Shown here one piece after another: positions 3,815-45,980 of a stretch of DNA of 64,000 nt. Source of the DNA: Dicyema japonicum (Eukaryota; Animalia; Dicyemida). The stretch lies in the NCBI GenBank assembly GCA_011109175.1, contig RDEW01000013.1, forward strand, positions 910,181 through 974,180, written 5' to 3'. Below the pieces are notes generated by a model. That model saw only the letters and a list, made by a program, of their open reading frames with translations, made no database searches and was not told the origin of the DNA. Every line of letters starts with the position of its first letter. Within the stretch, counting starts at the first letter, position 1. A program made the position numbers and the translations under genes.

Positions 3815-5830
3815 CTATGACACTGCCTCGTCCCTACAAAGAATACTCCCCAAAAGTATCCAGCGAAGTAATATCACATTCTCACCTAGATGACTACTAA
3901 TATCGGCTCTCGTTCCTGAGCTGTATAGAAGGATCGGTTGCACGAACGCATAAATAGACTTATCCTGAGATAATTTGGGGAACATAATTATCATTGCAAG
4001 GGACATCAGCATTTTTCGATTAGCCATGTCCTTGTGATCTCCAGAAGCGAGCCGAGAATTTTGACGAACCTCCACTTTTCATCAACCCGCTTAGGTATCC
4101 GTTCAATCGACGTCAGCTCAGTTTTTTTTAATTGATTTCAATGACAATCCATCACAAATATCTATGACTTTATCCTCAGCTGAATTAGGTAACTCCAAAG
4201 GCACTTGTTAGGTAACCCAATTCTTTACGAATGTCCCTCAAAGACCCGTCTTGAATGCTTCTCTTCATCCAAAATCAATAATCTTATTCAGTCTTAGTCA
4301 ATAACCTGAGAACAAGCAGTGGTTATTTCTACAAGTAAACTCCCAGAATGTACATCATTTTTTCAACTCCCAACTCCCAGAATGACTAAAAAATAGTTAT
4401 TCAATACACGAACCATTGATGGTTCCAAACGATATCACCGGTTGACCTTCCTTGGTTAAGTCCACTTTGACGGAGCGATAAATAGTTATAATAGATAAGG
4501 ATTTTTGTAGACACGTTTGTAGAATTACGGCCTCAGATAAATGTGTGTGCCTCACTTTTGGGAGTAGGAAAAAAGTCAAACGGAAAATGGTCAAATTTTA
4601 ATTTGGAAAAAAAGTCAAATTATTATTTCTTGGTCATTTTCAAATAAAATAAGATTTTAAAGACTTTATTTGTTTACAAAAAAATTTTCAAGAAAAATTT
4701 GCATTTGATTTTTTTCCGTTTTTCCTATTTTCTTCTGCTAATTTTACGAAAGATGGAAAAAAGTAAAAAAATTTAAGTCATGTTTATATTTTTGTAAAAG
4801 TCAATTTTTTTTAATTTCCAAAATTAAAATCACTCAAACCGCAACCTTGGTAAAATTGATTCTACTTTGAACTTTAAAATTTGACCTGCTAGTTGCGTAG
4901 CGTGCTTAAAAATAAAACTATTTTTACGTTGAATATTTATTTTTCTATGAAACTTATAAAATCGAATAAACGTGGATCAAAAAATTTTTTTCAATGGATA
5001 TATACTAGAAATTCCGGAACTAAATAGAAAATATACTGAAAATGTATTTTAAAAATTTCTAAAAAGAAGAAGTTTAATAACAGATCTTGAGTTTCAAAAT
5101 GCTACTGAAAGTCAACCTCATAATTATCCTTTTGACTTTCATGGAATCAGATTGAGCAAATTGACAAATGAATTTAAACTTCCGGCATATCATTACAATG
5201 AAACACCATCCCAAATTTTCTCTGAATATTTAGCACAATGCGATCCGAACTTAAACAATTATGTCCTTCTGATTCGTTTAGAAAAACAATCCGTAAGCAA
5301 CGCTCGTCTAATTGCGGTTAAAATTACATCATGGGGTTTAATTTTTGATTTTATATCGTGGTTAAACCAAATTCATTTTTTTAAAGTTTTGGGTGAAATT
5401 AAAATTGACTTTTTTCCAAAAAATATAAACATGGCTTAAAATTTTTGACTTTCCCCCATTTTTCGTACAATTAGCAGAAGAAAATGGGAAAACGAAAAAA
5501 AAGTGAACGGAAAAAAAGTCAAATGCAATTTTTTTTGAATTTTTTTGTTAAAAATAAAGTCTTTAAAGTCTTATTTTACTTGAAAATAATTAAGAAATGA
5601 TGATTTGATTTTTTTTCCTTTTGACTTTTTTCTACTTCCCTCACTTTTACCAGGTTTTTGTAGACAGTAATATATATTTCCCGTTGAGATTTCAAATAGA
5701 CAGTGAATCTTAAATATTTCGGTAAACATAATTTTTTGGCATTCTTCACAAATATTGTAAAGCCAGCCACTCGATTATTATTCGAACTCCAAAAATTTAT
5801 GAATCCGCGAACAGTTTATTAAGTAAGCAG
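3815..5830 (-). mobile_element. Degraded RTE-like LINE RT region, split by a MULE insertion
   Basis: Minus-strand remnants YAFVQPILLYSSGT, GRSTGDIVWNHQW and CLQKPGK. The LQKPGKSE segment joins across the 4560-5639 insertion. Confidence 0.65.
4560..5639. mobile_element. Non-autonomous Mutator-like element (MULE) with long TIRs
   Basis: Imperfect inverted repeats of about 270-300 bp (4560-~4830 versus ~5385-5639), starting GGGAGTAGGAAAAAAGTCAAA and ending TTTGACTTTTTTCTACTTCC. 9-bp direct duplication CTCACTTTT at 4551-4559 and 5640-5648. Internal ORF remnant FKLPAYHYNETPSQIF resembles a MULE transposase. Confidence 0.85.
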
Positions 5831-7219: not shown

Positions 7220-7320
7220 GAGATAAATGCATATTAATCATATTCTCATGAATGGAGATAATGCATATTAATCATATTCTCATGAATGGAGATAAATGCA
7301 TATTGATCTTATTCTCATTA
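7220..7320. repeat. Short tandem repeat, about 34-bp unit x3
   Basis: GAGATAAATGCATATTAATCATATTCTCATGAATG repeated three times. Confidence 0.85.
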
Positions 7321-7909: not shown

Positions 7910-7952
7910 CGAATGAAGTAGTATTTAAATTAATCGAGAAATTATCGTTAGA

Positions 7953-9631
7953 ATGGCAATGGCTTGTTTCCTTTTGTTTTTTATAATAAACTTCGGTAAT
8001 TTTTTTTGTAACTAGATATTGGATTTGGATTTTCAATGGGGGTATCCACATGAAATAATAAAATTTTAGTTTCCTAACCCAAATTCTGCTCAAAGTAAAT
8101 TTTGTTAAATACCTTTAGATCAAAATGGAGGAATCGGCGGTATTTCAATGAATATTAAATTTTAAAGGTCCTAACATCCATAATGGCCCACGTAAACTTA
8201 ATTATTTTATTTTTAGAATCCAGCGGAGGATCCAGTGGTATTTCAATGAATTTTAAATTTTAAAGGTCCTAACATCCATAATGGCCCACGTAAACTTTAT
8301 TATTTTATTTTTAGAATCCAGCGGAGGATCCAGTGGTATTTCAATGAATTTTACATTTTAAAGGTCCTAACATCCATAATGGCCCACGTAAACTTAATTA
8401 TTTTATTTTTAGAATCCAGCGGAGGATCCAGTGGTATTTCATTGAATTTTAAATTTTAAAGGTGCTAACATCCATAATGGCCCACGTAAACTTAATTATT
8501 TTATTTTTAGAATCCAGCGGAGGATCCAGTGGTATTTCAATGAATTTTAAATTTTAAAGGTCCTAACATCCATAATGGCCCACGTAAACTTAATTATTTT
8601 ATTTTTAGAATCCAACGGAGGATCCAGTGGTATTTCAATGAATTTTAAATTTTAAAGGTGCTAACATCCAAAATGGCCCACGTAAACTTAATTATTTTAT
8701 TTTTAGAATCCAGCGGAGGATCCAGTGGTATTTCAGTGAATATTAAATTTTAAAGGTGCTAACATCCAAAATAACCCACGTAAACTTAATTATATTATTT
8801 TTAGATTCCAGCGAAGGATCCATTGGTACTTCAATAAATATAAATTTTTAGGAGGATTTACGGTATTTCCGCATCAAACAATAAATATTTAGACTACTGG
8901 AACTACCCAGGCTAGAAGCAGCCGAACCACCCAACGTAAATTAATTAAATAATCTTTTTAGGAACCAGCAGAACATCCGGTTGTATTCTATGAATATTAA
9001 ATTTTAGGACAATATACGGTATTAAAGCATCAAAAAATAAATATTTAGACTGCAATTACCCAAGGTACTACCAACCAAGCCACCCAATGTAAACTTAATT
9101 AAATAATTTTTAGCTGCAGAATACAGTGGTATTTCTATGCATATTACATTTCAAAGGTAGTACTTACATACCTCCCCCGCGTAAGCATAATTAAATAATT
9201 TTTAGCTCCAGGATACGGTGGTATTTCCATGCATATTAAATTTTAAAGGTGGTCATGGGTCAGGTCCTTCAAGTAAGCCTAATTCAATAATTTTTAGATT
9301 ATGGTGTAACAGCAAGTAGTTTTTTATGAATTTTATTTTTTAGAATCTAAAAATCCATTTTCATTTATGCGTTCTGATTTATCAGGTTTTATTATTATTT
9401 TTTTAATTCCACTAAATTATAAGCCTGTAATCATTAGATCCTGATAATGATGAAAAAAATCCAAAAAATTGGAAATCTCTGATTTTTAGTAATTTTGTGT
9501 CCAAATTAGATAATTTTAATTATGGTTTAGTATCTTGTATCATCGGTGTGGTGGTTCTACCAGTCTACTTGAATTACAGAAAATTTAATAAAGAAACAAA
9601 AAAATCAGAATCGAAACCTGGAAATAAGTAA
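7953..9631 (+). CDS. Micro-exon gene 1: predicted 294-aa type-I membrane protein with Gly/Ser/Asn/Pro repeats (30 exons)
   Basis: Manual GT-AG splicing gives one uninterrupted 885-nt ORF. Exons: 7953-7995, 8016-8041, 8070-8094, 8119-8139, then 7x(24-nt + 21-nt) from 8168 with a 98-bp period, then 11,43,18,11,40,15,24,15,24,18,42 nt, last exon 9438-9631. Protein: MAMACFLLFFIINFDIGFG-FSMGFPNPNSAQNQNGGIG-(GPNIHNGPQSSGGSS)x7 with variants-GGFTTTGTTQARSSRTTQ...PKNWKSLIFSNFVSKLDNFNYGLVSCIIGVVVLPVYLNYRKFNKETKKSESKPGNK*. AATAAA at 9637-9642. Confidence 0.88.
8140..8825 (+). repeat. 98-bp tandem repeat x7 (28-nt intron + 24-nt exon + 25-nt intron + 21-nt exon)
   Basis: Units start at exact 98-bp spacing (24-nt exons at 8168, 8266, 8364, 8462, 8560, 8658, 8756) with no indels. 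Confidence 0.95.
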
Positions 9632-12600
9632 TTTATAATAAATGTTTAAAGAGATTCATTTTATGAGTATGGCAACTATTACAACAATTCCTAACAGTAG
9701 AATTATGCAGTCTAGTAATTAGTTTAACTTTCTTTTTTGGTAATTAACAATTTCTTTATTTTTTTATTATAATTATAAGAAATTTAAAATTCTGATTTAT
9801 TTAATTTTTTAGTAATTTACGTATTCTCGCTTTGGTGTTGTTGGTCGAACTTTCCTCTGCGAGAGTTCACGCTATTTATTCGTTTGGTTTAAGATTTCCT
9901 CTGTAGAACATTTATATCGCAGAAGAAAAAAATTATATCCCCCTCGAGAAGACGAGAAGAGTAGCATTATGGATAACACTTAACAAAAGCCTTAGAAATG
10001 AATTGGACAACAAGCGGGAGAAACTTTTTATGCCCATTCGCTGGATAGTGGAGGACGGATCGATTTTTCAAAAGAATTCAAAGATTCAGGACTTTGAAAG
10101 ATTCTGAGAAAATAATGAGGAGAGAGTCCGTTTCTAGTGTCCAAGACAGTTCTCTCAAAAAATTAAGAAGACATTTTCTAGATACGATAAGATAGTTACG
10201 GACCACTCAAAGAGACTGGAAATTACTAAAAGCTGGGATCACCTGTTTAGTTGGTAATGACTCTAAGAGATTTATGACCTCTCTGCACTCTCGGCTGTAC
10301 ATTTGATAGCAATCGGCCTTCTATATGTTAGTGAAGTCGAGTTAACTAACTAGACTTGATAATATGCATGTGCATAACACGCGCTTTTTAAGAGCAAATA
10401 ACAGTCACTTTAACTAACTGAAAACCTAATCTTAATTTATGAGTTTGGAAAATTAGTCTACGAGGCCATAGATACCTAGAAGCGCATGGTCTTTGGTAGA
10501 TCTACTAAGTTTGAGGATTCTCTTCCATGTTCTCACCTGGATGAGACTGTTTTTCTCCAGCCACTGTGAAAACCTAAACTGATTTATAACCCCCAATGTC
10601 ATTTGGAAGGCTAATTGAGAACATTTTCATACTAATTGTAAAAAAGGAATTCGCTCTCATCGCTAGATCCTTATTATTATTAATAGTAATGTCCGCGGAA
10701 CCAAAAAAATAAATTAATTTGAGGTTCCACCTTTGCCATGCATCTCAGGATACGCGGTGTAAGTCGTTTCCATCCTCCTCTGTTTCTCGCAACCGCCCTC
10801 GTATTGCTGGAGCCTGACAAATGGAAATATATTTCTAATAAATCATGTTAGTAATTTAAAAAAATACATTAGTCATTTTTCTAAGGACCTTTGAATATTA
10901 TAATTTTCCTTTACAGAAATATAACTGATCTTTTCAGAATCTTCAAAATTGTTCACTATGTTTTTTATTCGATTAGATTTTGGAATAAAAAAAGTGACGC
11001 AGTAAGAAACTCCCCCATCGTGTGAGAATTACAACTGGAGGAAGTTTAATCTCATCCAACATAGCTCTGTGTCAAAAATCAATCAAAATGATCATTGCGA
11101 GCATAATCTACGTTGAGTTAACTCTCTTGATGGCAACAGAGATCAACTGGAGGAGCCACTGAGTCTCGTCGTTGATAATTAAATAGAATTGTTTGTTTAA
11201 AAATTTGAGAGGTCTCAATATTTTTTGGCATTCTGTCTGATGTTTTTTTCCATTAAAAAATTGATCGATGTAATGTTGTTTAGATGATTTTACTATCTTA
11301 TAGCATTTTGGAAAAATAATCCTCCTTTAGGTGTTCGTGTAAATATGTATGAGTTTCTAGAAAATACTTTTGAAATTCGTTCCTTTTTTTGCCTCTGAGA
11401 TCTAATCGTTTTAATAAATGAGAAAATACAAGCCTGGTATTAAATGAAGACTGCTAATTTAAAAAAATTAAAATTAATTCCAAAGACCACTGTTAAACCG
11501 AAAAAACTAAGTGATCGAATTGAATCATGGCTCTCATCTTTGCTCGATGTTGATTCCTTGAGCCTAAAAATTCGCAATTCCTTTTTGGCATTGGTGTCCT
11601 TTTTTGTTTTTGTTTTTTTACACAACAAAATCAATTTAAAACGTGTATTTAAAAAAAAAGACAAATAAAAAATTGTAAATAAATTAAAAAAATAATTAAA
11701 ATAATTATATCCCAAATAGGACAATTCCCGCCCTAATAATAACTAAATAATATTGTCCCTGATTTTCCCTCATATATCTGTTCTTTACATAAATAAAGCG
11801 TGTCTCTGCTGAGCGGACTTCTAGCAAATATGTATCTGCGTATAAGTGCAGAGAATTAATTATATCAGGTCATAATGAAATATCTAAAAATAAACTGACG
11901 TTGTTAATTCAAATATAATTTTAATGGATAAAGAAGTCTTTGACAAAATCCAAAATGCGATTACGCCGTGATTCAGAGACCCTCGCAAATGGAGATGTTT
12001 TTAGCGCAACGGGATAACTGTCTTGTGGCATCTGGGGCAAAATCAGTCAAAATTGAAACAACACTAGGTTTCTAGAATAGGATGGTTGCCGATCTTCGAT
12101 TTTCCTAGGAGGCTTTTTGTTAGATTTGTCCTCACATTTTGTTAGTACATTTTCAAAATGCAGCAAAAACACGGTTACCCCCATAATATTTGGAATTTGC
12201 TGATTGAAATCGAGTTTTCACCTTCCCAACCTTTTCTCTGATGTGATAGACTTTTCTAGATGCTATTTTGTCGCAGATAAGAGAACAAAATAACCATCAA
12301 AATTCATTTTGAACGATGGAATTTAGGTTTTTTGTTTTTATTATTTAGAGACTGAAATTCCATATTTTGGATTAAAACACACGTGTTTCGAAAATGTATC
12401 TATCCAAATTTGCAATCCTCTTCTTTTACTTAGTCCACCAAGTTCTTTCAGCATTCCTCAGTCTAGGGTTGACTGCTAAGCATGTCGTTGCACGTGTGAG
12501 TCACGAATAGCTAACAGGATTCCATCACGTCTTCTGGGCCGATTCGACGCTAGTGCGCTTCAGTGATGCCCAGCGATAAGGCTGCTTAGTTAATATTCAG

Positions 12601-13394
12601 CTGTAGCCCAGGTCTCTCTGCTGTATAAAAGGATTGATCTTCATCTTTGGTTGTCTTTTCGTCCAGAGTTCGTTAGCGCTACATATTACACGAGCGATGT
12701 CTTTTTGTCAAGTTTTATTTCAAATCTCACAGTGTCGCTTCGTAATAAACAATAAATAGCAGAGGACATTGAATCGCCTTGAGGAGTCCAATAGTTGTTG
12801 GATTCAGTCTTCACAGCCAACTCTGTCTACAAGCAGTACACAAAAATCCTAATAGAATCGTCGCCCAAAATAGTCTTGAATATTTGTATTAAGTTGTCCC
12901 TTCGGATCGTGTCAAATGACAACTCACCAATAGTCACGTGGTCGTTTCTATTTTGCATTTCAGAGATACGACATAGAGCAACCATTGACTCAATGGTATC
13001 GTTTATGTAATCACCATTTTCTGACTTCAGTCCTGTGTTTTAATGATGTACTGCATCAGCAAAGATTATAATGAAAAAAGTTAACAGCAAAGTTTGAATT
13101 TAAGTTCACAACACGTCATTAAGTGTGTTTTCTTGCCTAATCTATGATTTGCCATGCAGAGCAGACTTCGGCATTCGTGTGGGAGTTTTTAAATAGAAAA
13201 AATGTGACAGAAAAACTCTGTTCACTTTTAATGCTTAAACTTGGTGGGTCATAGATATTCATTATGTTGATTAATCAGTCCAGATGAGTCATCCCCGAAT
13301 CTCTTGAAGTTGAAGCATGATTCGATATAATCAAAAGGATGAAGATGAGAATATGTTTGATAGTGCAGCTATCAATTTCTTAGTCAAGAAATTT

Positions 13395-13555
13395 CATCCG
13401 GAATCAGCATCAAAAGGTAAAAGAAATCCATTACATGCAGTTGTGGATACCTTCCAGTGGAGTGGGGGAGAGCAAAGGATCCTTTTTCGTGCCAGTCTGA
13501 CCTTAGGCGTCACCTAGACAGGTGGATCACATGAGCCGTTCTAAGAGGAAGGGAA
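13395..13555 (-). repeat. Dispersed repeat, second copy of 3340-3500 (LINE 3' region)
   Basis: CATCCGGAATCAGCAT...CATTACATGCAGTTGTGGA...CTAGACAGGTGGATCACATGA is shared between the two copies. Confidence 0.7.
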
Positions 13556-13925
13556 AGTAAAAACAGACAAAAACAGAAAACTTTAAAAAATTAGCCACGA
13601 AGAAAAAGGGAAGAAGAGAAAAATCAAAAAGTGGATAAAAATCACAACGTTATGTCATAATATCGACAATCAGCCAATTACAAGTGGGTAACTAGAATGT
13701 ACAAAAATGTAATGAGATTAATATAATTCAAATAAGCCATACGTAATAGAATTAAAAAAGGTGCAAAAAAAAACGAGTGGAATTACAAAAATGAGTTAAG
13801 ATAAATGATTCTTAGGAACAACAATCAAGAAAATAGAATGATAAAAAATCGAAAAATAGGATAGTAAGGTAATGGTAAAAAGAAAAAAAATCAGCACATA
13901 GTATTTATAGAATTAATGTAAGATG

Positions 13926-13941
13926 CGGATATTATAATGCG
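13926..13941 (+). promoter_or_regulatory. Putative TATA-containing core promoter motif of micro-exon gene 2
   Basis: CGGATATTATAATGCG, matches 7894-7909; about 55 nt before the ATG. Confidence 0.55.
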
Positions 13942-13995
13942 AAATAGCATATAAGTATGAAACAAAAACGAAAAAATAAAAAAAGATAAATTATA

Positions 13996-16900
13996 ATGAA
14001 AGTGGGCATCTACATAATTATATTCTTGATAAACATGGGTAATGTTGAGATAAGACTTAGAAATCGGATATGGATTTCCTTCAAATGTATTTAGAGAAAT
14101 AATAAATGTATAGATTAATGGAATGGGTGGTCATGGAATGCTACAGAATGCACAAAGTATAACTTAAAGATAATCTTTAGATGGATTTGGAAATGGTAGA
14201 ATTTTGAGAGAATTATTTTTTAGGAGGATCAACGGTAATTTAAAAAATAAAAACATAGACGAGTACACATGTCCAAACTACTCCACCTAACGCTGGACAA
14301 AGTAAATCTTAAACATAATTTATAGATGGGGGAGGAAATGGTAGAATTATTAGAGAATTATTTTTAGGAGGATCAACGGTAATTTAAAAAATAAAAACAT
14401 AGACGAGTACACATGGCCAAACTACTCCAACTAACGCTGGACAAAGTAAATCTTAAACATAATTTATAGATGGGGGAGGGAATGGTAGAATTTTTAGAGA
14501 ATTATTTTTTAGGAGGATCAACGGTAATTTAAAAAATAAAACATAGACGAGTACACATGGCCAAACTACTCCAACTAACGCTGGACAAAGTATATCTTAA
14601 ACATAATTTATAGATGGGGGAGGAAATGGTAGAATTATTAAAAAATTATTTTTTAGGAGGATCAACGGTAATTTAAAAAATAAAAACATAGACGAGTACA
14701 CATGGCCAAACTACTCCCCCTAACTCTGGACAAAGTATATCTTAAAACATAATTCTTAGATGGGAGGAAATGGTAGAATTTTAGAGAATTATTTTTTAGG
14801 AGGATCAACGGTAATTTAAAAATAAAAACATAGACGAGTACACATGCCAAACTACTCCTTAACGCTGGACAAAGTATATTTTAAAATAATTTATAGATGG
14901 AGGAAATGGTAGAATTTGAAGAATTATTTTTTAGGAGGATCAACGGTAATTTAAAAATAAAAAACATAGACGAGTACATGGCCAAACTACTCCCTAACTC
15001 TGGACAAAGTAATATCTTAAAATAATTCTTAGATGGATTTGGAAATGGTAGAATTTTAGAAATTATTTTTTAGAGGATCAACGGTAATTTTAAAAAAAAA
15101 ACATAGACGAGTACGCATGGCCAAAAACTACTCCCTTTAACTCTGGACAAGTATATCTTAAAAATAATTTTAGATGGATTTGGAAATGGTAGAATTTTGA
15201 AGAATTATTTTTTAGGAGGATCAACGGTAATTTAAAAAATAAAAATATAGACGAGTACTCAGGGCCAATCTACTTCCTTTAACTCTGGACAAAGTATATC
15301 TTAAAATTAATTCTTAGATGGGGACATGGTAGAATTTTGAAAAATTATTTTTTAGGAGGATCAACGGTAATTTAAAAAAATAAACATAGACGAGTACGCA
15401 TGGCCAAACTACTCCTTTAACTCTGGACAAAGTATATTTAAAAATAATTTTTAGATGGAGGAAATGGTAGAATTTTGAGAATTATCTTTTAGGAGGATCA
15501 ACGGTAATTTAAAATAAAAACATAGACGAGTACGCAGGCCAAACTACTCCCTTTAACTCTGGACAAAGTATATTAAAAATAATTCTTAGATGGATTTGGA
15601 AATGGTAGAATTTTGGAGAATTATTTTTTAGGAGGATCAACGGTAATTTAAAAAAAAAACATAGACGAGTACGCAGGGCCAAACTACTCCCTTTAACTCT
15701 GGACAAAGTATATTTAAAAATAATTCTTAGATGGATTTGGAAATGGTAGAATTTTGAAAATTAATTTTTTAGGAGGATCAACGGTAATTTAAAAAATAAA
15801 ACATAGACGAGTACGCAGGGCCAAACTACTCCCTTTAACTCTGGACAAAGTATATTTAAAAATAATTCTTAGATGGATTTGGAAATGGTAGAATTTTGAA
15901 AAATTATTTTTTAGGAGGATCAACGGTAATTTAAAAATAAAAAACGAGTACGAGCAGGCCAAACTACTCCCTTTAACTCTGGACAAAGTATATTTAAAAA
16001 AATTCTTAGATGGATTTGGAAATGGTAGAATTTTGAAAAATTATTTTTTAGGAGGATCAACGGTAATTTAAAAATAAAAACATAGACGAGTACTCAGGGC
16101 CAATCTACTCCCTTTAACACTGGACAAAGTATATCTTAAAAATAAATCTTAGATCCATTTGTACATGGTAGAATTTTGAAAGAATTATTTTTTAGGAGGA
16201 TCAACGGTAATTTAAAAAATAAAACATAGACGAGTACTCAGGGCCAATCTACTTCGTTTAACTCTGGACAAAGTATATCTTAAAAATAATTTTAGATGAA
16301 TTTGGAAATGGTAGAATTTTGAAAGAATTATTTTTTAGAAGGATCAACGGTAATTTAAAAAATAAAAATAGACGAGTACGCAGGGCCAAACTACTCCTTT
16401 AACTCTGCACAAAGTATATTTTAAAAATAATTCTTAGATCAATTTGGACATGGTAGAATTTTGATAAAATTATCTTTTAGTAGAATCAACGGTAATTTAA
16501 AATAAACACATAGACGAGTACGCAAGGCCAAACTACTCCCTTTAACTCTGCACACAGTATATTTAAAAAATTCTTAGATCCATTTGGACATGGTAGAATT
16601 TTGAAAAATTATTTTTTAGGAGATCAACGGTAATTTAAAAAATAAAAAATAGACGAGTACGCAGGCCAAACTACTCCCTTTAACTCTGCACAGTATATTT
16701 AAAAATAATTTTTAGATCCATTTGGACATGGTAGAATTTTGAAAATTATTTTTAGGAGGATCAACGGTAATTTAAAAAATAAAAATAGACGAGTACGCAG
16801 GCCAAACTACTCCCTTTAACTCTGCAAAAGTATATTTAAAAATAATTCTTAGATCCATTCGGACTGGTAGAATTTTGAAAAATTATCTTTTAGGAGAATC

Positions 16901-18303
16901 AACGGTAATTTAAAAAATAAATAGACGAGTACGCATGGCCAAACTACTCCCTTTAACTCTGGACAAAGTATATTTAAAAATATTCTTAGATGGATTTGAA
17001 TGGTAGAATTTTAAAAATTATTTTTTAGGAGGATCAACGGTAATTTAAAAAATAAAACATAGACGAGTACTCAGGGCCAAACTACTCCCTTTAACACTGG
17101 ACAAAGTATATCTTAAAAATAATTTTAGATATTTGGAATGGTAGAATTTTGAGAAATTATTTTTTAGGAGGATCAACGGTAATTTAAAAAATAAAAACAT
17201 AGACGAGTACTCAGGGCCAAACAACTCCTTTAACTCTGGACAAAGTATACTTAAAATAATTTTAGATCCATTTGGACAATGGTAGAATTTTTGAGAAAAT
17301 TATTTTTAGAAGGATCAACGGTAATTTAAAAAATAAAAACATAGACGAGTACTCAGGGCCAAACTCTTCTCTTTAACTCTGCACAAAGTATATCTTAAAA
17401 ATAATTTTTAGATGGATTTGGACTTGGTAGAATTTTTGAGATAATTATTTTTTAGGAGGATCAACGGTAATTTAAAAAATAAAAAAATAGACAAGTACTC
17501 ATGACCAAACTACTCTTTTTTACTCTGGACAAAGTATAATTTAAAAATTATTTTTAGATGGATTTGGAAATGGTACTTTTTTGAAATAATTATTTTTAGG
17601 TGGAACAACGGTTATTTAAAAAATAAAAACATAGACGAGTAAACATGGCCAAACTCCTCCGCCAAACGCTGCATCAAGTATTCATTAGATTTTATTTTTA
17701 GATGAAGGAGGACATGGTATAATTTTTTCAACAATTAATTTTAGATAGTATCACTGTATTTCCTTCTTATAATTATAATAAATATTTAGACTGTCTTATA
17801 TTCATCAACTGGAACTCATCATACGACCAAAGTTTTTATTTTATAACATAAATTAGATTCTGTTTCAACATCATGTAATATTTTAAATTTTAAATTCTTT
17901 TTTTAGACGGATCTTCTGTATTTTTTTATTTTTCATTTATTTAGACTAATGGAAAATTTTCAGATTTTTATAACCCTTTTGCCCAAAGTAGATTTTTTCA
18001 AATTATTTATTAGATTCAGCTAAGGGATCATCTAGTATTCTGAATTAAAATTTTTTAGGTCCATCGATTAATCTAGATTCTACTCTTTCTGGTTTATTTA
18101 TTATTTTTTAATTTTTCTAAATTCAATGTTGTTTATCAATAGTTACTCCATATAATGGATTCATTCCACAAAATTGGAAAGAATATTTTTATAGTAATCT
18201 TTATCAACTAAACATAGATCACTTCAATTCTGTTTTGGTTCTTTTTATTTTATGTACCCTGGTTTTGACTATCTATCGAAACAATACCCGAAGTAAACGA
18301 TAG
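13996..18303 (+). CDS. Micro-exon gene 2: mucin-like type-I membrane protein, about 87 exons, about 730 aa if in frame; paralog of gene 1. Frame-breaking 1-2 nt deletions occur in several repeat units.
   Basis: Exons 13996-14038 (43 nt), 14061-14086 (26), 14114-14156 (43), then 25 units of 15+11+43-nt exons encoding NGFGN-GGST-TSTQGQTTPFNSGQ and variants, eight divergent micro-exons, last exon 18143-18303. N-terminus MKVGIYIIIFLINMEIGYG-FPSN. C-terminus IPQNWKEYFYSNLYQLNIDHFNSVLVLFILCTLVLTIYRNNTRSKR*. Confidence 0.8.
14157..17716 (+). repeat. About 141-bp tandem repeat x25 (three micro-exons plus three 24-29 nt introns per unit)
   Basis: GATCAACGGTAAT or a close variant recurs 25 times between about 14227 and about 17603. 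Each unit has three GT...AG AT-rich segments. Confidence 0.95.
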
Positions 18304-20600: not shown

Positions 20601-21191
20601 CAAAGAGCATTTATTGGATGAACTCACTGTTGTGACTGTACTAGAATCCATGACTTCTTTTTTCCATCGAAACATTTTTTTGCAAAAAACCACAATAGAA
20701 ACTTTTTAAAATTGTTTAAATTAAATTATTCCAAAGACCAAGGGTGACCAAACTAACTATGTCCTTGATCCTGACTCGTTCCAGCATTCCAGAACTTGTC
20801 TCCAGGTAACGACATTGTCTCCGGGAAGTAATAATTGGACCCTCTTGATGCCGGCAAGGCATTGAGCGTCTTCTCAGTAAGCTGGATCCAACGACGCCAT
20901 CGGACGAAATAATTTATGAGCAACTATCCATATAGCACCAGATGGGCCACGCGGTCAATAAAATCTAAAAAAACTGTTGTTTTTATTTAAAAATTAATAT
21001 GTCAAAAAGTTTAAAATTTAAATTCTTTGTCAAGACTGTCAAAATTTTAATTTATTTTTTATTTCTTATAGTTTTTGACGATACCCAGAAATCAGCTGAG
21101 AAAAATAGTAAGAATCGAGGGAGAACTACTAATACTTTCCATATGGAAAGATTATGCTTATATTGGTAGGAAAATAATAATTGCCGACGAC

Positions 21192-21909
21192 AGAGCTGAC
21201 AACTTTGATGAGGAAGGAATCTATTTCTGGAAGAGCATTGGCGAAAGGTTTAAAAGCTGGATCCCTGCTTGGAGATAAAGAAGACATTATTGCACGGAAA
21301 ATTAAAAGCAAATACGGCCTTATACAACTTGAGAAGAAATTGGTTTCTAAGAAAGAAGGGCTTGAATCGAGAGATCAGAACTCGACTATACAATTCGTTA
21401 GTCAACCAATACTCCTATATAATGCAAGTTCTTGGTCATTAACCCTAAATGACATTGAAAAACTTAAACTCCTTCCATCGGGACAACTGCGGAAGATTCA
21501 TTCGTGCTGGGACCGTATGAGAACAAGAAGTCAAGTACTTATACTCTGTTACGTCTTCTAAACCGATTTCACTAAACATCATGGAATTTCGTTGGAGCCT
21601 ATTTGGGACACATCCTACGGGGAAATATCGAAACTCCAGCTAATGTTGCCATGGAGGAATACTTCCAAACTGAGGAGGTGAAGTTCCGAGGACGTCCGAG
21701 AGCATCACTGGCCACGACACTGAATGAAGACCTGAAGAGAATAGGATTATCTTTAACTACGGGAGATGACCTGGACTACTTGAGGGATTTGGCTCAGGAT
21801 CGTGGAAAGTGGAGAAAATTAACTAAAAGATTAATGTTTGGTACTGCACTGGTTTTGTCATTTCCAATGGCAAGACGTTGTGCTTTATAATAATATAATA
21901 ATAATATAA
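21192..21909 (+). mobile_element. 5'-truncated RTE-like LINE with (ATAAT)n tail and an about 125-bp flanking direct duplication
   Basis: GSLLGDKEDI, QPILLYNASSW, GHILR, FRGRPR, LAQDRGKW. Flanks 21067-21191 and 21910-22036 are near-identical. Confidence 0.85.
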
Positions 21910-36693: not shown

Positions 36694-37985
36694 TTAGTTA
36701 AGAGCTCTTTCGCGTGGCCCTAAAAGGGGTTCGCTTGAGCCATGTTTTGCAGCCATCCTCCTCGCCCACGCCATCTTGTTCCTGACCCTCATTCGAACAT
36801 CATCCAGATCGTCCGGTGTCATCAATTTACGACTGTTTTGTTTGTAGTCATCTTTTAAGCAGGTTGGAAGTGTGTTTCTTGGTCTGCCTCGAAATCCGCG
36901 ACTTCTGGCGTAGTAGAAATATTCTTCCATTATTCTGTTACTTGGCGTAGTCGGGTCCAGTCTGAGGATATGTCCAAATAGTCGCCATCTCGATAAAATA
37001 ACATCGGTGCTGAGTGGTCTGGATTTACATCGTGAATATAGATTTTCATTTGAGATTTTTCTCGGCCAAAAAATTCCAATCAACATGCGGAGTTGGCTCC
37101 TGTGAAAAGTATCTAGCTTCTCTAAATCAATTTTAGAACATGCCCATGTTCCAGTATTGTATAGCAAAATTGGTTTAACAAACGTGTCGTATAGTCTGAC
37201 ACGAAGTTTCTGTGATACATCTTTTTTCCTTATCCAAATTAGGTACATTTTTTGAAATATATGGTAGCCAGCATTTTCCTTCGACAAATATCCTCAGCAT
37301 CACCTAGCAGTGAGCCGAGTTTTTTGGTATGTCTCCAGCACTCATCGTTCTTTGATTCTGCTCGTTCGACTCGTGTATATTCAGTTTTTTTAATGTTTAT
37401 GCGCAAATCCCAATTCTTAAAAATACGTTCGGCTTGAAGTAAAATTTGGTCAAGTATTTCTTGGTCGGTAGACACAAAGTCTACATCATCCGGATAAATT
37501 AACTCTGTTATGTCCCAGTATTTAGGACCCATGACATTTCTCAATTCCTTGAGCGCAGCTTCGAGGTAAACAATAAATATAATTGGGGACAAAGAATCTC
37601 CTTGTGGAGTGCCCATGTTGGTACTGAAACACTTCGAATGCTTTGTTCCTATTCTCACGGATAGGTCAGTTTCGGAAAGTAATAAACTTATTAGTCTCAG
37701 GCAGTCCTCGTCAAGCAGTTCCTTTAGAACAATCATGAGTTTTTCTCTATTGATGCTGTTAAAAGCCTTCGTTAGATCAATTCCTAGGATGTAGATTACT
37801 TTCGTGTATTTTTGACATATTGATGTGAGCCATCGATGACTCCATACAATATCTGAGGTTGATCTTCCACTTCTAGACCCACTTTGACTTAGGGAAAGGT
37901 ATTTTTCCACTGGCTCTCGTATACGGTTAAGCACTATGATCGATAAGGTTTTCCTGCATCCTTTGATATTGGAACGGACAAACAA
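36694..37985 (-). mobile_element. 5'-truncated RTE-like LINE, RT domain, one frameshift
   Basis: ORFs 37239-37985 and 36694-37287: GIDLTKAFNSINR, GTPQGDSLSP, YPDDVD, KKLGSLLGD, RWRLFGHILR, FRGRPR. Confidence 0.92.
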
Positions 37986-38435: not shown

Positions 38436-39460
38436 TGGATGAATTGTCGGTTAGGATAATCAGACTACTACTTGCGAATACAAGACTATCTTTGAGGACA
38501 GAAGGAGCAACTTCCCACAATTTCAAAACAACGATTGGGACACCCCAGGGTGATTCCCTCTCCCCTTTACTATTCACCATATACCTTGAATCTGCACTCC
38601 GCGACCTCCGTAAATTCTATATAGGAGACATAGAAGAGACATCTTATGCGGATGATGTGGATTTCGTATCACGGGACGTGACCGCACTCTAACACCTACT
38701 AGAAAATGCACCTGCGGAGCTTGAGAAATGGTTTCTCAGCGTAAATGTAAACAAAACTGAAATTACGGAAATCAAAAGAGAAGACGATATTACTCATGAA
38801 AGATGGAGACGTACTAATAAGCTCGGCTCTCTACTAGGAGACGCTGAAGATGTACTAAGGAGGAAAACACTGGCAAATGCGGCAATGGCTAAACTGAAGA
38901 AAGGATGGCTAAGAGCCAAAGGACTTGGAATTGACATCAGATGCAGGCTTTACAACGCGTTTGTGAAACCGATCCTACTGTACAACGCTGGGACATGGGG
39001 AAGTTCCTTCAACGAACTATTGAAACTGGATTCGTTCCATAGAAGGCAACTAAGAAGCTTACTCGGAATGGAGTGGCCACGTAGAATATCAACCACTGGT
39101 ATCTACAACAAGTGTATGTGTTCGTACATCAGCAAGGATGTGATAGATGCCCGGTGGAGGCTATTTGGGCATGTACTAAGAATGAACCCGGACGCACCCG
39201 CTAACAAAGCGATGGAAGATTACTTTGACAGTTGCGACAAACCCTTCCGCGGACGACCTAGATCGACACTTCCGACTGCCTTAAACAAAGACTTAAATCG
39301 TGTGAGAAAAAATCTAAAGACGGGGGACGACCTGGACGAATTGAGATCACTCGCATTCGACAGAGGAAGATGGAAAAGACTAACTATAAATATTGTTTCT
39401 TTGAGTGTTGCACATGCGGGGCTATAATCATTATGGCTTTCGTGAAAGTGCCTTAATAAT
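38436..39460 (+). mobile_element. 5'-truncated RTE-like LINE with (TAA)n tail and 12-bp TSD
   Basis: GTPQGDSLSP, YADDVD, RWRLFGHVLR; in-frame stops. AATAATGGAAGT flanks both ends (38424-38435 and 39461-39472). Confidence 0.92.
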
Positions 39461-40159: not shown

Positions 40160-41985
40160 TTTTATAACCGACCGAAATTACTCTCGGGTCCAACCTCAGG
40201 ACGTATCCAAAAAGTCTCCAACGAGAGCTAATGATCTCGTGACTTAATGGTGTACAGTCACACTTATTGTACAGTCCATTCCAGTTATGCTTCTTAGATG
40301 ATTCCTGTGAAACGAGTCTAGCTTCTCCAATTCCTCTTTTAAGGTGACCCAGGTCCCAGAGTTGTATAGTAGGATTGGTTTGATAAAGGTGTCGTATAAC
40401 ATTATCCTTTGTTTTACGTTATTCCTTTTCCGTTTTAGCCATAGGTCTTTCAGCCCGTGTAATGCCGCGTTTACCATAGTTTTTCTCCGTATGATATCTT
40501 CAATATCTCCTAATTGGGAGCCAAATTTCTTTGTATGTCTACATTTCTCTTCGAGTAGGTTATTCATTCGTCCTATTTCTGTCCGTTCTGTTTTTTTCTG
40601 TTCACGGTGAGAAACCCTTTCCCAATTATATCTGGTGCTTTTTCTAGTATATGTTCCAGGAGTTTTTTGTCTTCAGAGATTAGGTCGACATCATCAGCAT
40701 AAATCACTTCTTCTATTTTTTCATTGGTATAATGGTCTCAGTTCCCTCATAGCGGCCTCCAAGTATATTGTGAATAGTAACGGAGAGAGGGAGTCTCCTT
40801 GAGGAGTGCCTGTGTTTGTTTCAAATTTTCTTGAGTAGGTTTTTCCAACTCTCACAAGGAGTTCTGTTTTAAATATAAGAATTTGGAACATTCTTAGACT
40901 CGATTCGTCAATAAACCCTTCCAGCACTGTCATCAATTTGTTCCTGTTAACTTTTGATAGATCTATTCCCCAGAATTTGGGTGACATTGCAATATCTTTG
41001 ATGTGTTGCACATCTTCATCTGTGACTCCAGACTGCATCAGCTGTTGATTTCCCTTCTCTGAACCCACTTTGACTTCGGGTAGTCATAGGCGGGTCCTTT
41101 TATTCGTTCCAATACAATGTTAGCTAAGACTTTTTGCAGAGAATTTGTTTCCGTTGCGTGTCCATTTCGTGTATTCTCATTATTATTGTTTGTAGTGTTG
41201 TTATGTTTCTTATGTTTGATACCATGTTTCAATAGCCATTCTGTGATCGCTGACAGTTGTTGAACCTTCGTATGAGCGTGCGTTTTTAAGAGAGCGTTTG
41301 TCATTGATCCGGCATATAATGTAATCAATTTGGTTGTATATAGGGACTAGTTTTCCATCTGGGTTTCTTCGTTCGCCCTTCCAAGTGGTTATGTGGCATG
41401 CACGATGAGAGAATGCGGTGTTGCACAAGAACAGTTTGTTTGCCGTGCAGAAATGGCCAAGTATGGTCCCAGGCAAGTTTCTTTTCCCACGTCCGTGTCT
41501 TCCCATGAAGGTATCTTTTGAGTTTTTTTTGTTCCGATTTTCGCATTCAGATCGCAGCAATGAATATAAGTGAGGACGACTCGTATTCATTATACGTTTT
41601 TGATAATGCTGAGTAAAATTCATCCAGCTCAGCCGGGTTTTTTGCAACTCTTCCACAGTGTGGCGCATATACATTTATAATTGTTAGTGTATTTTTAGGG
41701 GAACACTGGTTGTTCAGATAGATCTGTATTACGCAGATCCTGTCATTCACCCGCCAAGTGCGACTGATGTCGGCTGATAGTTTTCTGTTAATGGCGAATC
41801 CGAGACCATAGTGTTTTGAGTCACTGGGTAGACATATTAGTCGATATTTTCCATGGTTTTCATCGAGATAGTACGTAATTTTCGTCTCTTGTATACAGCC
41901 AATGGTAACGTTATATCTTTCTAGGTCATCACAGAGTATTTCTTGACTGAGGCTTAGATATTCCTCTAGCATTGAAGGTAAGAAG
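40160..41985 (-). mobile_element. Degraded RTE-like LINE with APE endonuclease and RT, internally deleted
   Basis: GCIQETK, YGLGFA, INVYAP, YNQIDYI, SDH, GTPQGDSLSP, YADDVD across several frames. Confidence 0.9.
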
Positions 41986-43049: not shown

Positions 43050-45980
43050 AAACCCTTTCAATCTTTTTGGTTCTCCCCACCGTCCGGTGTCCTTTCATCT
43101 CCTGTGTCTTCGACCCTGTCTGGTGTCCCCATTTATCCAGACTTTTGATTCTTCTATGTGGAGACGTCGAAACCAATCCTGGTCCATGGATAGGTTTTAC
43201 AATTATACAACTGAATACGAATGGGGTCAGGAAGTAAATCTTTGAACTCCGGGCACTTCTCCGCGAAAATGAGGCTGACCTCGCTTTAATACAGGAGTCC
43301 AAGCTATCTCCCTCCATACCAACACCCTCTTTTCCCGGATACACAGTGATCCGTAAAGATCGTCAGGGAAAACGCGGAGGAGGACTACTTACTATTATAA
43401 AGAACGATTTTCTTTTATGGATACAACTCAACAAACCTCAGAGCTTCTTGGCTCCGACAAGACTTTGGAGCAGATTACTGTCAAAATGGAGTTATTCCCG
43501 TTCTTTTGGATCCATTTAGCTAATTTATATATTCCTCCACAAGGATCGTGTCCGTCATCTTACACCCCTGATTTATCACGCATTTCAACGTTGAAAAATC
43601 TACTGTTATGTGGGGATCTTAATGCACGACATCCAGTTTGGCTCACTTCCCAATTATTTGATAACCGAGGAGAACTCATTGCAAATTATCTTCCTGACCT
43701 GATTATACTGAACAACCCTAACTCACATACGAGAACCCCATTAAGGATGACTGATAGCTGCACATCCCCCGACTTAACACTATGCTCACCTTCTCTGGCT
43801 GGACTCATTTCCTGGAACGTCTTTTACGGCTTCTCCAGTGACCACAATCCAATCCTTCTAAAATTGAGAGGTCTTCGACGATACAGGAGACGGCGGCGAA
43901 ATCAAAAAGATTCAAGGATTATACGAAGGTTGACTGGTCTGGTTTCAGTAACCTTGTGGATAAATTCTTGGCCGGAGATTATCCTCCCAATACGCTCTAT
44001 TGACGAGGCCGCAGAAATTATCAGCGCTGCCATTCAGAAAGCTGACCATATTTTTATTCCTATATCGTCATACAAGAAGTTTATTCCTACCCTCAGCTCT
44101 TATACAATAAGTCTTATAAAACAAAGAGACCGGCTGAAGAGATGCCATCTGTTGGACATGAAGTCTTTGACAGCCCTCAGACAACTGAATAAAAGATCTG
44201 TCAGAGCATAAAAGAACACAAGGACAAGAGATGGCAGCATCTAGTTAACCACCTCGACAGGAAAAGTACATCCCGACATCTTCTGGAAAACTCTTAAACA
44301 AGTCAAGTCGGAGCTGGATGATGCAGACGGAACCGGAAAGTCTTCTCCTGAACACTTATGCCACCTACATCCTAACATCCTTATGAAACATTACGCTGGA
44401 ATTAGCTTCAAACCATTCTCGAAACACCTGGACATTAAGGTGCGTGCCCATAAACCGAAGAAGGAACCTTATCACGAACTATTCACAGATGACCAAGTCT
44501 TGGATGTGATCACCAGATTAAAGAGCTCACGGGCGTGCGGGCCTGACAAAGTATCTTCTATTCACCTAAAACACCTAAGCCACTACGCAATTGGCTACCT
44601 CACGCATATATACAATCTGTCCATTAACTATAATATTATTCCTAAGATTTGGAAGAATTCTATCATCAGACCGATATTGAAGGCTGGGAAACCAGAGACA
44701 GAACCTGCATCCTACAGGCCTATTTCCGTTACCAGCACACTGTCAAAAATTATGGAGAAACTTGTATTATCAGTCATTATTCCGTATCTTCCGCGTCCTA
44801 TATTTCAACATGGTTTCCTCCGCGGTAGGTCCACCGCTACATACTTGGCAACTTTATCGCAGTTCATTGCCGACGGTTTTAACACCCATCCTCCGCCTCA
44901 CAAACGCACAATCTTGGTTTCTATTGACATCAACAAAGCCTTTGACACTGTTTCGAGGAAAATCTTGGTTGGAAAAATATTTTCTACTAATATTCGTCCG
45001 AATGTGAAATTATGGCTGGCCAACTTTTTGTCTGGAAGACGTGGAAGAGTAGTCAGTGGTGATCTCAGATCTAGATCACGATTACTACCGAACGGGGTAC
45101 CCCAGGGGTCTCCACTTTCACCAATTCTATTCAACCTTTTCCTACACGACCTACCTAATGATGGAGACGAAGATTCCCTGTTATTATCCTACGCAGACGA
45201 CGTAGTCATTGCAATACGGAACCGCTCGACGCAAGTCGCATCCCTTAAAACTCAGACAAAATTGAACATTCTCCACGATTGGATTGTGGCAATCGACTTA
45301 ACGATTTCTGCAACCAAGTCTATCTGTTCCACATTCACGTCGGACCGTCGTTCCAAGGATGAACCGAGTCTTTATTGGTCCCACTAGGATTCCAGTGACA
45401 AAGTCCCCCATTGTCCTTGGAGTCAAGTACGACAGCCTTCTCAAATTCAACTCCCACGCAACAGACATGATCACCAGGGGCCTCCAGAAAGTTAACGTTA
45501 TACGCGCCCTTGTTCGGAGGACCACGAGGAACATGGACTTTTCCGTTTCTACACCTACCAACAAACAATCGCGCCTGCCATTGAGTATGCCTCCGTTGCA
45601 TGGAGATTCGGGCTATCGGAGTCTTTGGTCCAAAGAATCAACTCGATATACCGGAAAACAATCAGTATGCTTTCCCACGTAATGGATCAACAGTCGACTC
45701 ACTACTCATGGAAGCTAAGATCCGTAGTCGTGGCTCCGGATTTTTTGGCGTCTGTGAGGAAGATGGAAATCCGCTTCGCCTGATCCTTTCCATGGCAAGA
45801 GAAAACCGATTGGATAAGAAATTCCCCTCCCCGATCGGATTCCTCTGCAAGACCGAGAGAAGGCTCTTCCGGAAAGTAATGGGGACGATGGAGATCACAG
45901 ACGTCGAATGGCACAATGATTGCAAGGACTGGGATCACCTAACTGTATGACTCTTTTGTCTTTCTTTCTCGGTGTTCCAA
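43050..45980 (+). mobile_element. Near full-length Ingi/Vingi-like LINE (2A-like peptide, APE endonuclease, RT; no ORF1 seen), frameshifted
   Basis: LLILLCGDVETNPGP, IIQLNTNG, LIQESKL, LLCGDLNARH, SSDHNPI, SYRPIS, QHGFL, DINKAFDTV, GVPQGSPLSP, YADD in ORFs 43417-44211 and 44383-45387. Confidence 0.9.

Follow-up and report, generated by a model that had tools for sequence, protein, structure and literature searches.

Micro-exon genes for putative mucin-like membrane proteins in Dicyema japonicum, with stalks probably expanded by repeat growth

The DNA analysed here, called the window below, is a stretch of 64,000 nucleotides (C35:910181-974180) from the genome of Dicyema japonicum, a parasite of the octopus kidney. 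The genome that we searched holds 67,542,437 bases in 377 contigs, and all array and copy counts are based on this single haploid assembly. It is described as a merge of Illumina and Falcon long-read assemblies, with 67.5 Mb in 377 scaffolds, a mean intron of 38 bp and 49% repeats (PMC6736024); in dicyemids the median intron measures 27 bp, and introns shorter than 30 bp make up two thirds of the total (PMC6543705). Two genes lie in the window and a third, related one on the same scaffold, all with exons predicted from the genomic DNA, those of genes 1 and 2 by a frame-aware splice parse:

7953..9631, plus strand: gene 1, 31 predicted exons from ATG (7953) to TAA (9631), an open frame of 287 amino acids, modelled as a type-I membrane mucin-like protein
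7953..8041, plus strand: gene 1 exons 1 and 2 (43 and 26 nt), which probably encode a signal peptide (KD19 1.96, residues 1-19)
8139..8848, plus strand: gene 1 98-bp tandem array x7 (7.3 copies), with 24-nt exon, 25-nt intron, 21-nt exon and 28-nt intron
8852..9088, plus strand: gene 1 split modules of 11+43 and 11+40 nt with an 18-nt exon between them, Thr-rich
9089..9315, plus strand: gene 1 92-bp units with exons of 15 and 24 nt, diverged from the 98-bp array (71-75% alike)
9386..9437, plus strand: gene 1 52-nt intron, with counterparts of 51 nt in gene 2 and 50 nt in gene 3
9489..9509, plus strand: gene 1 probable last intron, 21 nt, 3n and stop-free, so that retention would keep the frame
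9510..9631, plus strand: gene 1 last exon, with membrane helix (KD19 1.97) and a basic tail of 19 amino acids
13996..18303, plus strand: gene 2, 88 predicted exons from ATG (13996) to TAG (18303), with both ends as in gene 1; array frameshifted as assembled
13996..14156, plus strand: gene 2 exons 1-3 (43, 26 and 43 nt) by the splice parse
14181..17701, plus strand: gene 2 144-bp tandem array x25 (24.9 copies), with exons of 15, 11 and 43 nt and introns of about 28, 24 and 24 nt
17702..18091, plus strand: gene 2 diverged unique modules (15; 11+42; 18; 11+43; 21; 33 nt), of which 11+42 misses 3n by a single base
18092..18303, plus strand: gene 2 3' end, with 51-nt intron, 51-nt exon, probable 24-nt intron (18194-18217) and last exon
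C35:646169-645700, minus strand: gene 3 (L011:1955-1486), third member, 272 kb from gene 1, with no array

Gene 1 has introns of 20-30 nt, apart from the single 52-nt intron, and 29 internal exons, of which 23 are 3n phase-1 exons while the rest form pairs (26+25, 11+43 and 11+40 nt) that sum to 3n. Internal exons of at most 36 nt make up 61% of the coding sequence in gene 1 (25 of 29 exons) and 36% in gene 2 (57 of 86). The parse of gene 1 contains 27 strong introns, compared with a mean of 4.9 (maximum 11) in shuffled sequence, and its longest micro-exon run is 17, compared with at most 2 after shuffling. No further micro-exon runs were found in the remaining window or in 200 kb of flanks.

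The initial annotation had described genes 1 and 2 as paralogues with conserved ends and different central repeats, and this stands. Their C-termini agree at 41% over 39 amino acids (pairwise E 4e-8); exon 1 is in both a 43-nt, phase-1 exon ending in IN(F/M), and exon 2 a 26-nt exon reading (D/E)IG(F/Y)GF; the central arrays are 98 bp x7.3 in gene 1 versus 144 bp x24.9 in gene 2. Introns of the same position class resemble each other across genes more than other pairs do (mean z 1.26 versus 0.48, permutation p 2e-4), and TATA-like motifs lie 25-50 nt upstream of all three start codons (7921-7929, 13945-13952 and, on the minus strand of L011, about 2000-1990), with an identical 9-mer in genes 1 and 3. 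The 11+43 module that the annotation saw repeated 25 times in gene 2 is indeed repeated there, although the actual unit is a 15+11+43 triplet. For its proposed presence in gene 1, the case for homology is carried by the phase-0 intron and by the 11-nt exon, which agrees at 9/11 positions; the likeness of the 43-nt exons is weak (z 0.2-3.5).

One could also read the arrays as non-coding satellites and the gene models as over-read, given that chance GT-AG pairs are expected in AT-rich DNA, that homologues were not found in databases and that the splicing of the models is predicted from genomic DNA. Words from gene 1 are present in five sequencing runs, none of the five recorded as RNA: four runs from one 2019 sample hold 67-87% of the words and may be source data, and one 2017 run holds 7%, a share that would fit either RNA or shallow DNA sequencing. 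Against a satellite origin stand an open frame of 31 exons that begins with a signal peptide and ends with a membrane helix, the recurrence of this layout in three diverged copies, the shuffle control, the invariant splice sites, and TATA-like and poly(A)-like motifs located where a gene would have them; we consider it very improbable.

The third member was found with a profile of the C-terminal pieces of genes 1 and 2 (E 6e-6). It has six predicted exons (43, 26, 55, 32, 42 and 128 nt) and introns of 22, 27, 23, 50 and 22 nt, with the same signal-peptide and membrane ends; the many symmetric micro-exons seen in genes 1 and 2 are absent from it. Neither profile nor single-protein searches of the genome gave members beyond these three, and no second copy of either array was found in the assembly, each array matching its own locus only; these counts are lower bounds. 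Exact genome matches to each of two junction patterns fell on the same three loci, with further matches at control level; five two-mismatch matches to an exon-2 pattern were judged to be chance, and candidate matches on C90 and C68 were rejected with E above 1. On C90, at L012:1013-1420 on the plus strand, lies a short gene with tiny introns, which we take to resemble the transcription elongation factor Spt4.

Gene 3 also bears on the order of the last introns. The initial annotation gave a longer last intron (52 nt in gene 1, 51 nt in gene 2); the lengths are right, but these introns are probably second-last, followed by introns of 21 nt (9489-9509) and 24 nt (18194-18217). In gene 3, 42 nt past the long intron, a 22-nt GT-AG stretch carries an in-frame stop and its splicing restores the frame, and its phase and place match those of the stop-free 21- and 24-nt stretches of genes 1 and 2. 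Because the gene 3 counterpart has a stop that splicing would remove, we regard it as likely that the 50-52-nt intron is the second-last. Part of the C-terminal protein similarity between genes 1 and 2 may then come from reading through the short last intron.

The predicted products are those of membrane-tethered, low-complexity glycoproteins. In gene 1, a hydrophobic N-terminus, likely cleaved after G-F-G, precedes a stalk of 19% Gly, 18% Ser, 12% Asn and 10% Pro, and a C-terminal hydrophobic helix is followed by the basic tail; the 98-bp unit encodes 15 amino acids (Gly/Ser/Asn/Pro), and the product has 14 Ser-Gly pairs and zero N-glycosylation sequons. The array unit of gene 2 encodes 23 amino acids with 36% Ser+Thr, and its last exon a membrane helix (KD19 2.03) with a basic tail of eight amino acids. 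The stalks contain no Cys and have Ser+Thr contents of 26% and 36%, and in all three genes C-terminal hydrophobic 19-mers (1.97-2.43) are followed by basic tails. We therefore favour, with moderate confidence, a dicyemid-specific family of three genes for single-pass membrane glycoproteins of a mucin-like glycocalyx or of adhesion, whose stalks would have grown by tandem duplication under mostly constitutive splicing; their splicing, surface location, glycosylation and function we infer from the predicted sequences. In genes 1 and 2 this splicing would yield an extended stalk that is unstructured and O-glycosylated, with length and Ser/Thr content more important than the exact sequence, and copy number would probably differ between alleles. 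A structural or adhesive low-complexity surface protein had been named earlier as an alternative to a variation system, and it fits at least as well.

Protein databases were queried with the C-terminal genomic pieces, the repeats and the N-terminal exons encoding stretches of <30 amino acids, and no homologue or domain that would support a function scored above cut-off in the databases searched. A profile search of 1.84 billion representatives with these pieces found no true relatives, its three short matches being repeat-driven (P0003 was inspected and is unrelated); a word search of 5.8 billion clustered proteins, Pfam and the ESM Atlas gave nothing usable for the same pieces. A match to CD34/podocalyxin (PF06365) was rejected, as it reached 13.9 bits against a cut-off of 26.3 (E 0.055), in one of three genes, and rests on the membrane helix. 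The literature search returned no paper on dicyemid mucins, on such genes or on dicyemid alternative splicing.

Two of the three members are broken as assembled. In gene 3, the 32 nt of exon 4 fall one base below 3n and the frame runs into a stop, which leaves this gene either mis-assembled or broken. That all internal exons are 3n or paired to 3n, as initially proposed, holds for gene 1 (29 of 29) and fails for gene 2 as assembled, where off-length exons occur in 13 of 25 units, exons 80 and 81 (11+42 nt) add a one-base shortfall beyond the array, and 13 internal stops interrupt the spliced frame. The array exon indels, 42 deletions versus 4 insertions, lie in units 5-7, 9, 10, 13, 16 and 18-23, leaving units 1-4 and 24-25 intact, and half of the deletions fall in runs of at least three bases (background 30%). 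Substitutions affect 0 of 298 splice-dinucleotide positions of the array versus 187 of 3192 elsewhere, and none of the 12 splice-dinucleotide columns is variable versus 63 of 131 others (p 4e-4).

It could be that gene 1 is the working gene while genes 2 and 3 are genuine pseudogenes or truncated copies with real frameshifts, as the 13 stops, the short exon 4 of gene 3 and a dN/dS near 1 among the array units (0.90-0.95 between gene 2 units) would suggest. The splice dinucleotides, without substitution, argue against gene 2 as a decaying pseudogene, as do the excess of deletions, their preference for runs and the concentration of indels in the central units 5-23. The assembly, moreover, merged Falcon long-read contigs (PMC6736024). 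With the deletion bias and intact splice sites, the frameshifts of gene 2 are probably long-read consensus errors, and we infer assembly error for the indels of genes 2 and 3 alike; the pseudogene interpretation we hold to be improbable. Deletion sharing between neighbouring gene 2 units gave no separation of error from mutation. Two almost identical copies of an unrelated tiny-intron gene, on C328 (L006) and C369 (L008), likewise show a single-base discrepancy, which sits in an A-run of a predicted exon; a motif in this gene may recall a tyrosine phosphatase.

DNA-level repeat turnover, claimed for these genes at the outset, is supported as a past process. Neighbouring gene 2 units share substitutions in blocks and the last units are the most diverged, which is the pattern expected from unequal crossing-over. 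The ancestor would have resembled gene 3, with six exons for a signal peptide, a short linker, a membrane helix and a basic tail. The arrays of genes 1 and 2 would then stem from tandem duplication, through unequal crossing-over or slippage, of internal exons together with their 25-nt introns, each gene amplifying its own unit variant. The internal introns of phase 0 cluster with intron 2, which suggests that exons 2 and 3 were copied as a pair to give the split 11+43 module. Where introns are this short, a duplication of ordinary minisatellite size takes complete exon+intron units along, and since only frame-keeping units survive, exon symmetry is explained: duplicates inherit a symmetric founding unit and selection for an open frame permits only 3n changes. 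Symmetry thus needs no extra cause; as a residue of tandem duplication and open-frame selection, it is no evidence of the exon skipping that had been suggested as a possibility.

The initial annotation had proposed a candidate surface-variation system. In its full form, comparable to the schistosome micro-exon genes (MEG) and SmPoMuc mucins, symmetric micro-exons would be skipped in combinations and alleles would differ in repeat number, evading or matching recognition by the cephalopod host. Each gene 1 internal exon is individually 3n or in a 3n pair, the same design gives skipped isoforms in schistosomes (PMC4015677), and the 50-52-nt introns of these genes mean that longer excisions are not out of the question. 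Gene 2 array exons vary as much as or more than introns (0.21 versus 0.12, 0.06 versus 0.04, 0.15 versus 0.17), and gene 1 units have several amino-acid changes and no silent one (pS 0, pN 0.08), which is compatible with diversifying selection, the changes being too few for significance. Skipping a single exon, on the other hand, needs an excision of at least 61-68 nt (median 67-74), where two thirds of dicyemid introns are below 30 bp (PMC6543705). In Paramecium bursaria, whose introns are 24 nt long, the events most often regulated were retention and alternative 3' sites (PMC12862383). Skipping near-identical repeats would alter length rather than epitopes, dN/dS between gene 2 units is not above 1, and the family is tiny, with three members and each array unique in the assembly. 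These points, together with the origin of the symmetry in duplication and frame selection, count against the proposal; we consider such variation, and regulated exon skipping as such, unlikely, and less likely than plain stalk expansion by repeat growth. More doubtful still is the specific combination in which regulated skipping of 15-24-nt exons and 11+43 pairs, with rapid repeat-number change, diversifies mucins against the cephalopod host; if true, the schistosome MEG/SmPoMuc strategy would have arisen independently in this dicyemid, under splicing conditions considered unfavourable to skipping. For cassette-type antigenic variation (VSG, vls), no silent donor archive was found, three members and no extra array copies being lower bounds.

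Among known systems, SmPoMuc is alike in belonging to a parasite of a mollusc, in Ser/Thr-rich repeats on micro-exons duplicated with their introns, in a conserved non-repeat part and in introns at least as homogeneous as exons (PMC2576457). As there, a tandemly duplicated exon+intron unit encodes the protein repeat; in SmPoMuc a single exon of 27 bp encodes the repeat, its unit spans about 1 kb, and identity exceeds 93% across some ten genes (PMC2576457), whereas the Dicyema units measure 98-144 bp with two or three exons and are private to each gene of a three-member family, so that no homogenisation between members (>93%) was found. The Dicyema family is also predicted to be membrane-anchored, shows no sequence similarity that we could find, and is known here from genes alone. 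It works like SmPoMuc but, judged by its C-terminal pieces, is not homologous to it. The Schistosoma MEGs, whose exon-skipping variation was shown in transcripts, share a conventional signal-peptide end, a symmetric micro-exon run, lineage specificity and, in some, a membrane anchor (PMC4015677). In genes 1 and 2, much of the coding sequence lies in symmetric micro-exons, and hydropathy and a small-residue motif point to a signal peptide on the conventional first exons. MEG introns are of ordinary length, whereas those of Dicyema are about 25 nt, and the split 11+43 modules are not skippable singly; no true match in protein databases to the C-terminal pieces points to MEG homology. By sequence, the predicted layout is that of membrane-tethered mucins of the MUC1 and CD34/podocalyxin type: a signal peptide leads into a Cys-free Ser/Thr/Pro/Gly stalk built of variable tandem repeats, and a single membrane helix into a short basic tail. 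Those mucins usually carry their repeats within one large exon, and the Dicyema proteins have no SEA or EGF domain.

The preferred reading, a family of mucin-like membrane proteins, would give candidate host-contact proteins for an animal group with surface molecules almost unknown, and gene callers would probably mask such genes as satellites. If there is no variation, what is left is a lineage-specific mucin family of unusual but explicable layout, in which the repeat-free gene 3 would show how the arrays arose, 25-nt introns letting minisatellite-sized duplication copy exon+intron units. Gene 2, with 88 exons in 4.3 kb and 11-nt exons between 24- and 28-nt introns, would offer a sharp test of spliceosome spacing and of whether skipping occurs with ultra-short introns.

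The surroundings are, as initially described, rich in transposable elements, but this is not special in a genome with 49% repeats (PMC6736024). A LINE at 43417-45950 on the plus strand encodes an endonuclease (PF14529) and a reverse transcriptase (PF00078) in broken frames. Fragments of a second LINE type lie at 36694-37985 and 40244-41972 on the minus strand and at 38885-39427 and 21181-21561 on the plus strand, with the RT domain within 37239-37985; related fragments flank genes 1 and 2, which is ordinary for this genome. A 34-bp tandem repeat x2.9 at 7220-7318, about 630 nt upstream of gene 1, has no visible intron-like structure, and an inverted pair of about 240 bp with 79% identity (4605-4829 and 5379-5618) possibly represents the ends of an old DNA transposon.
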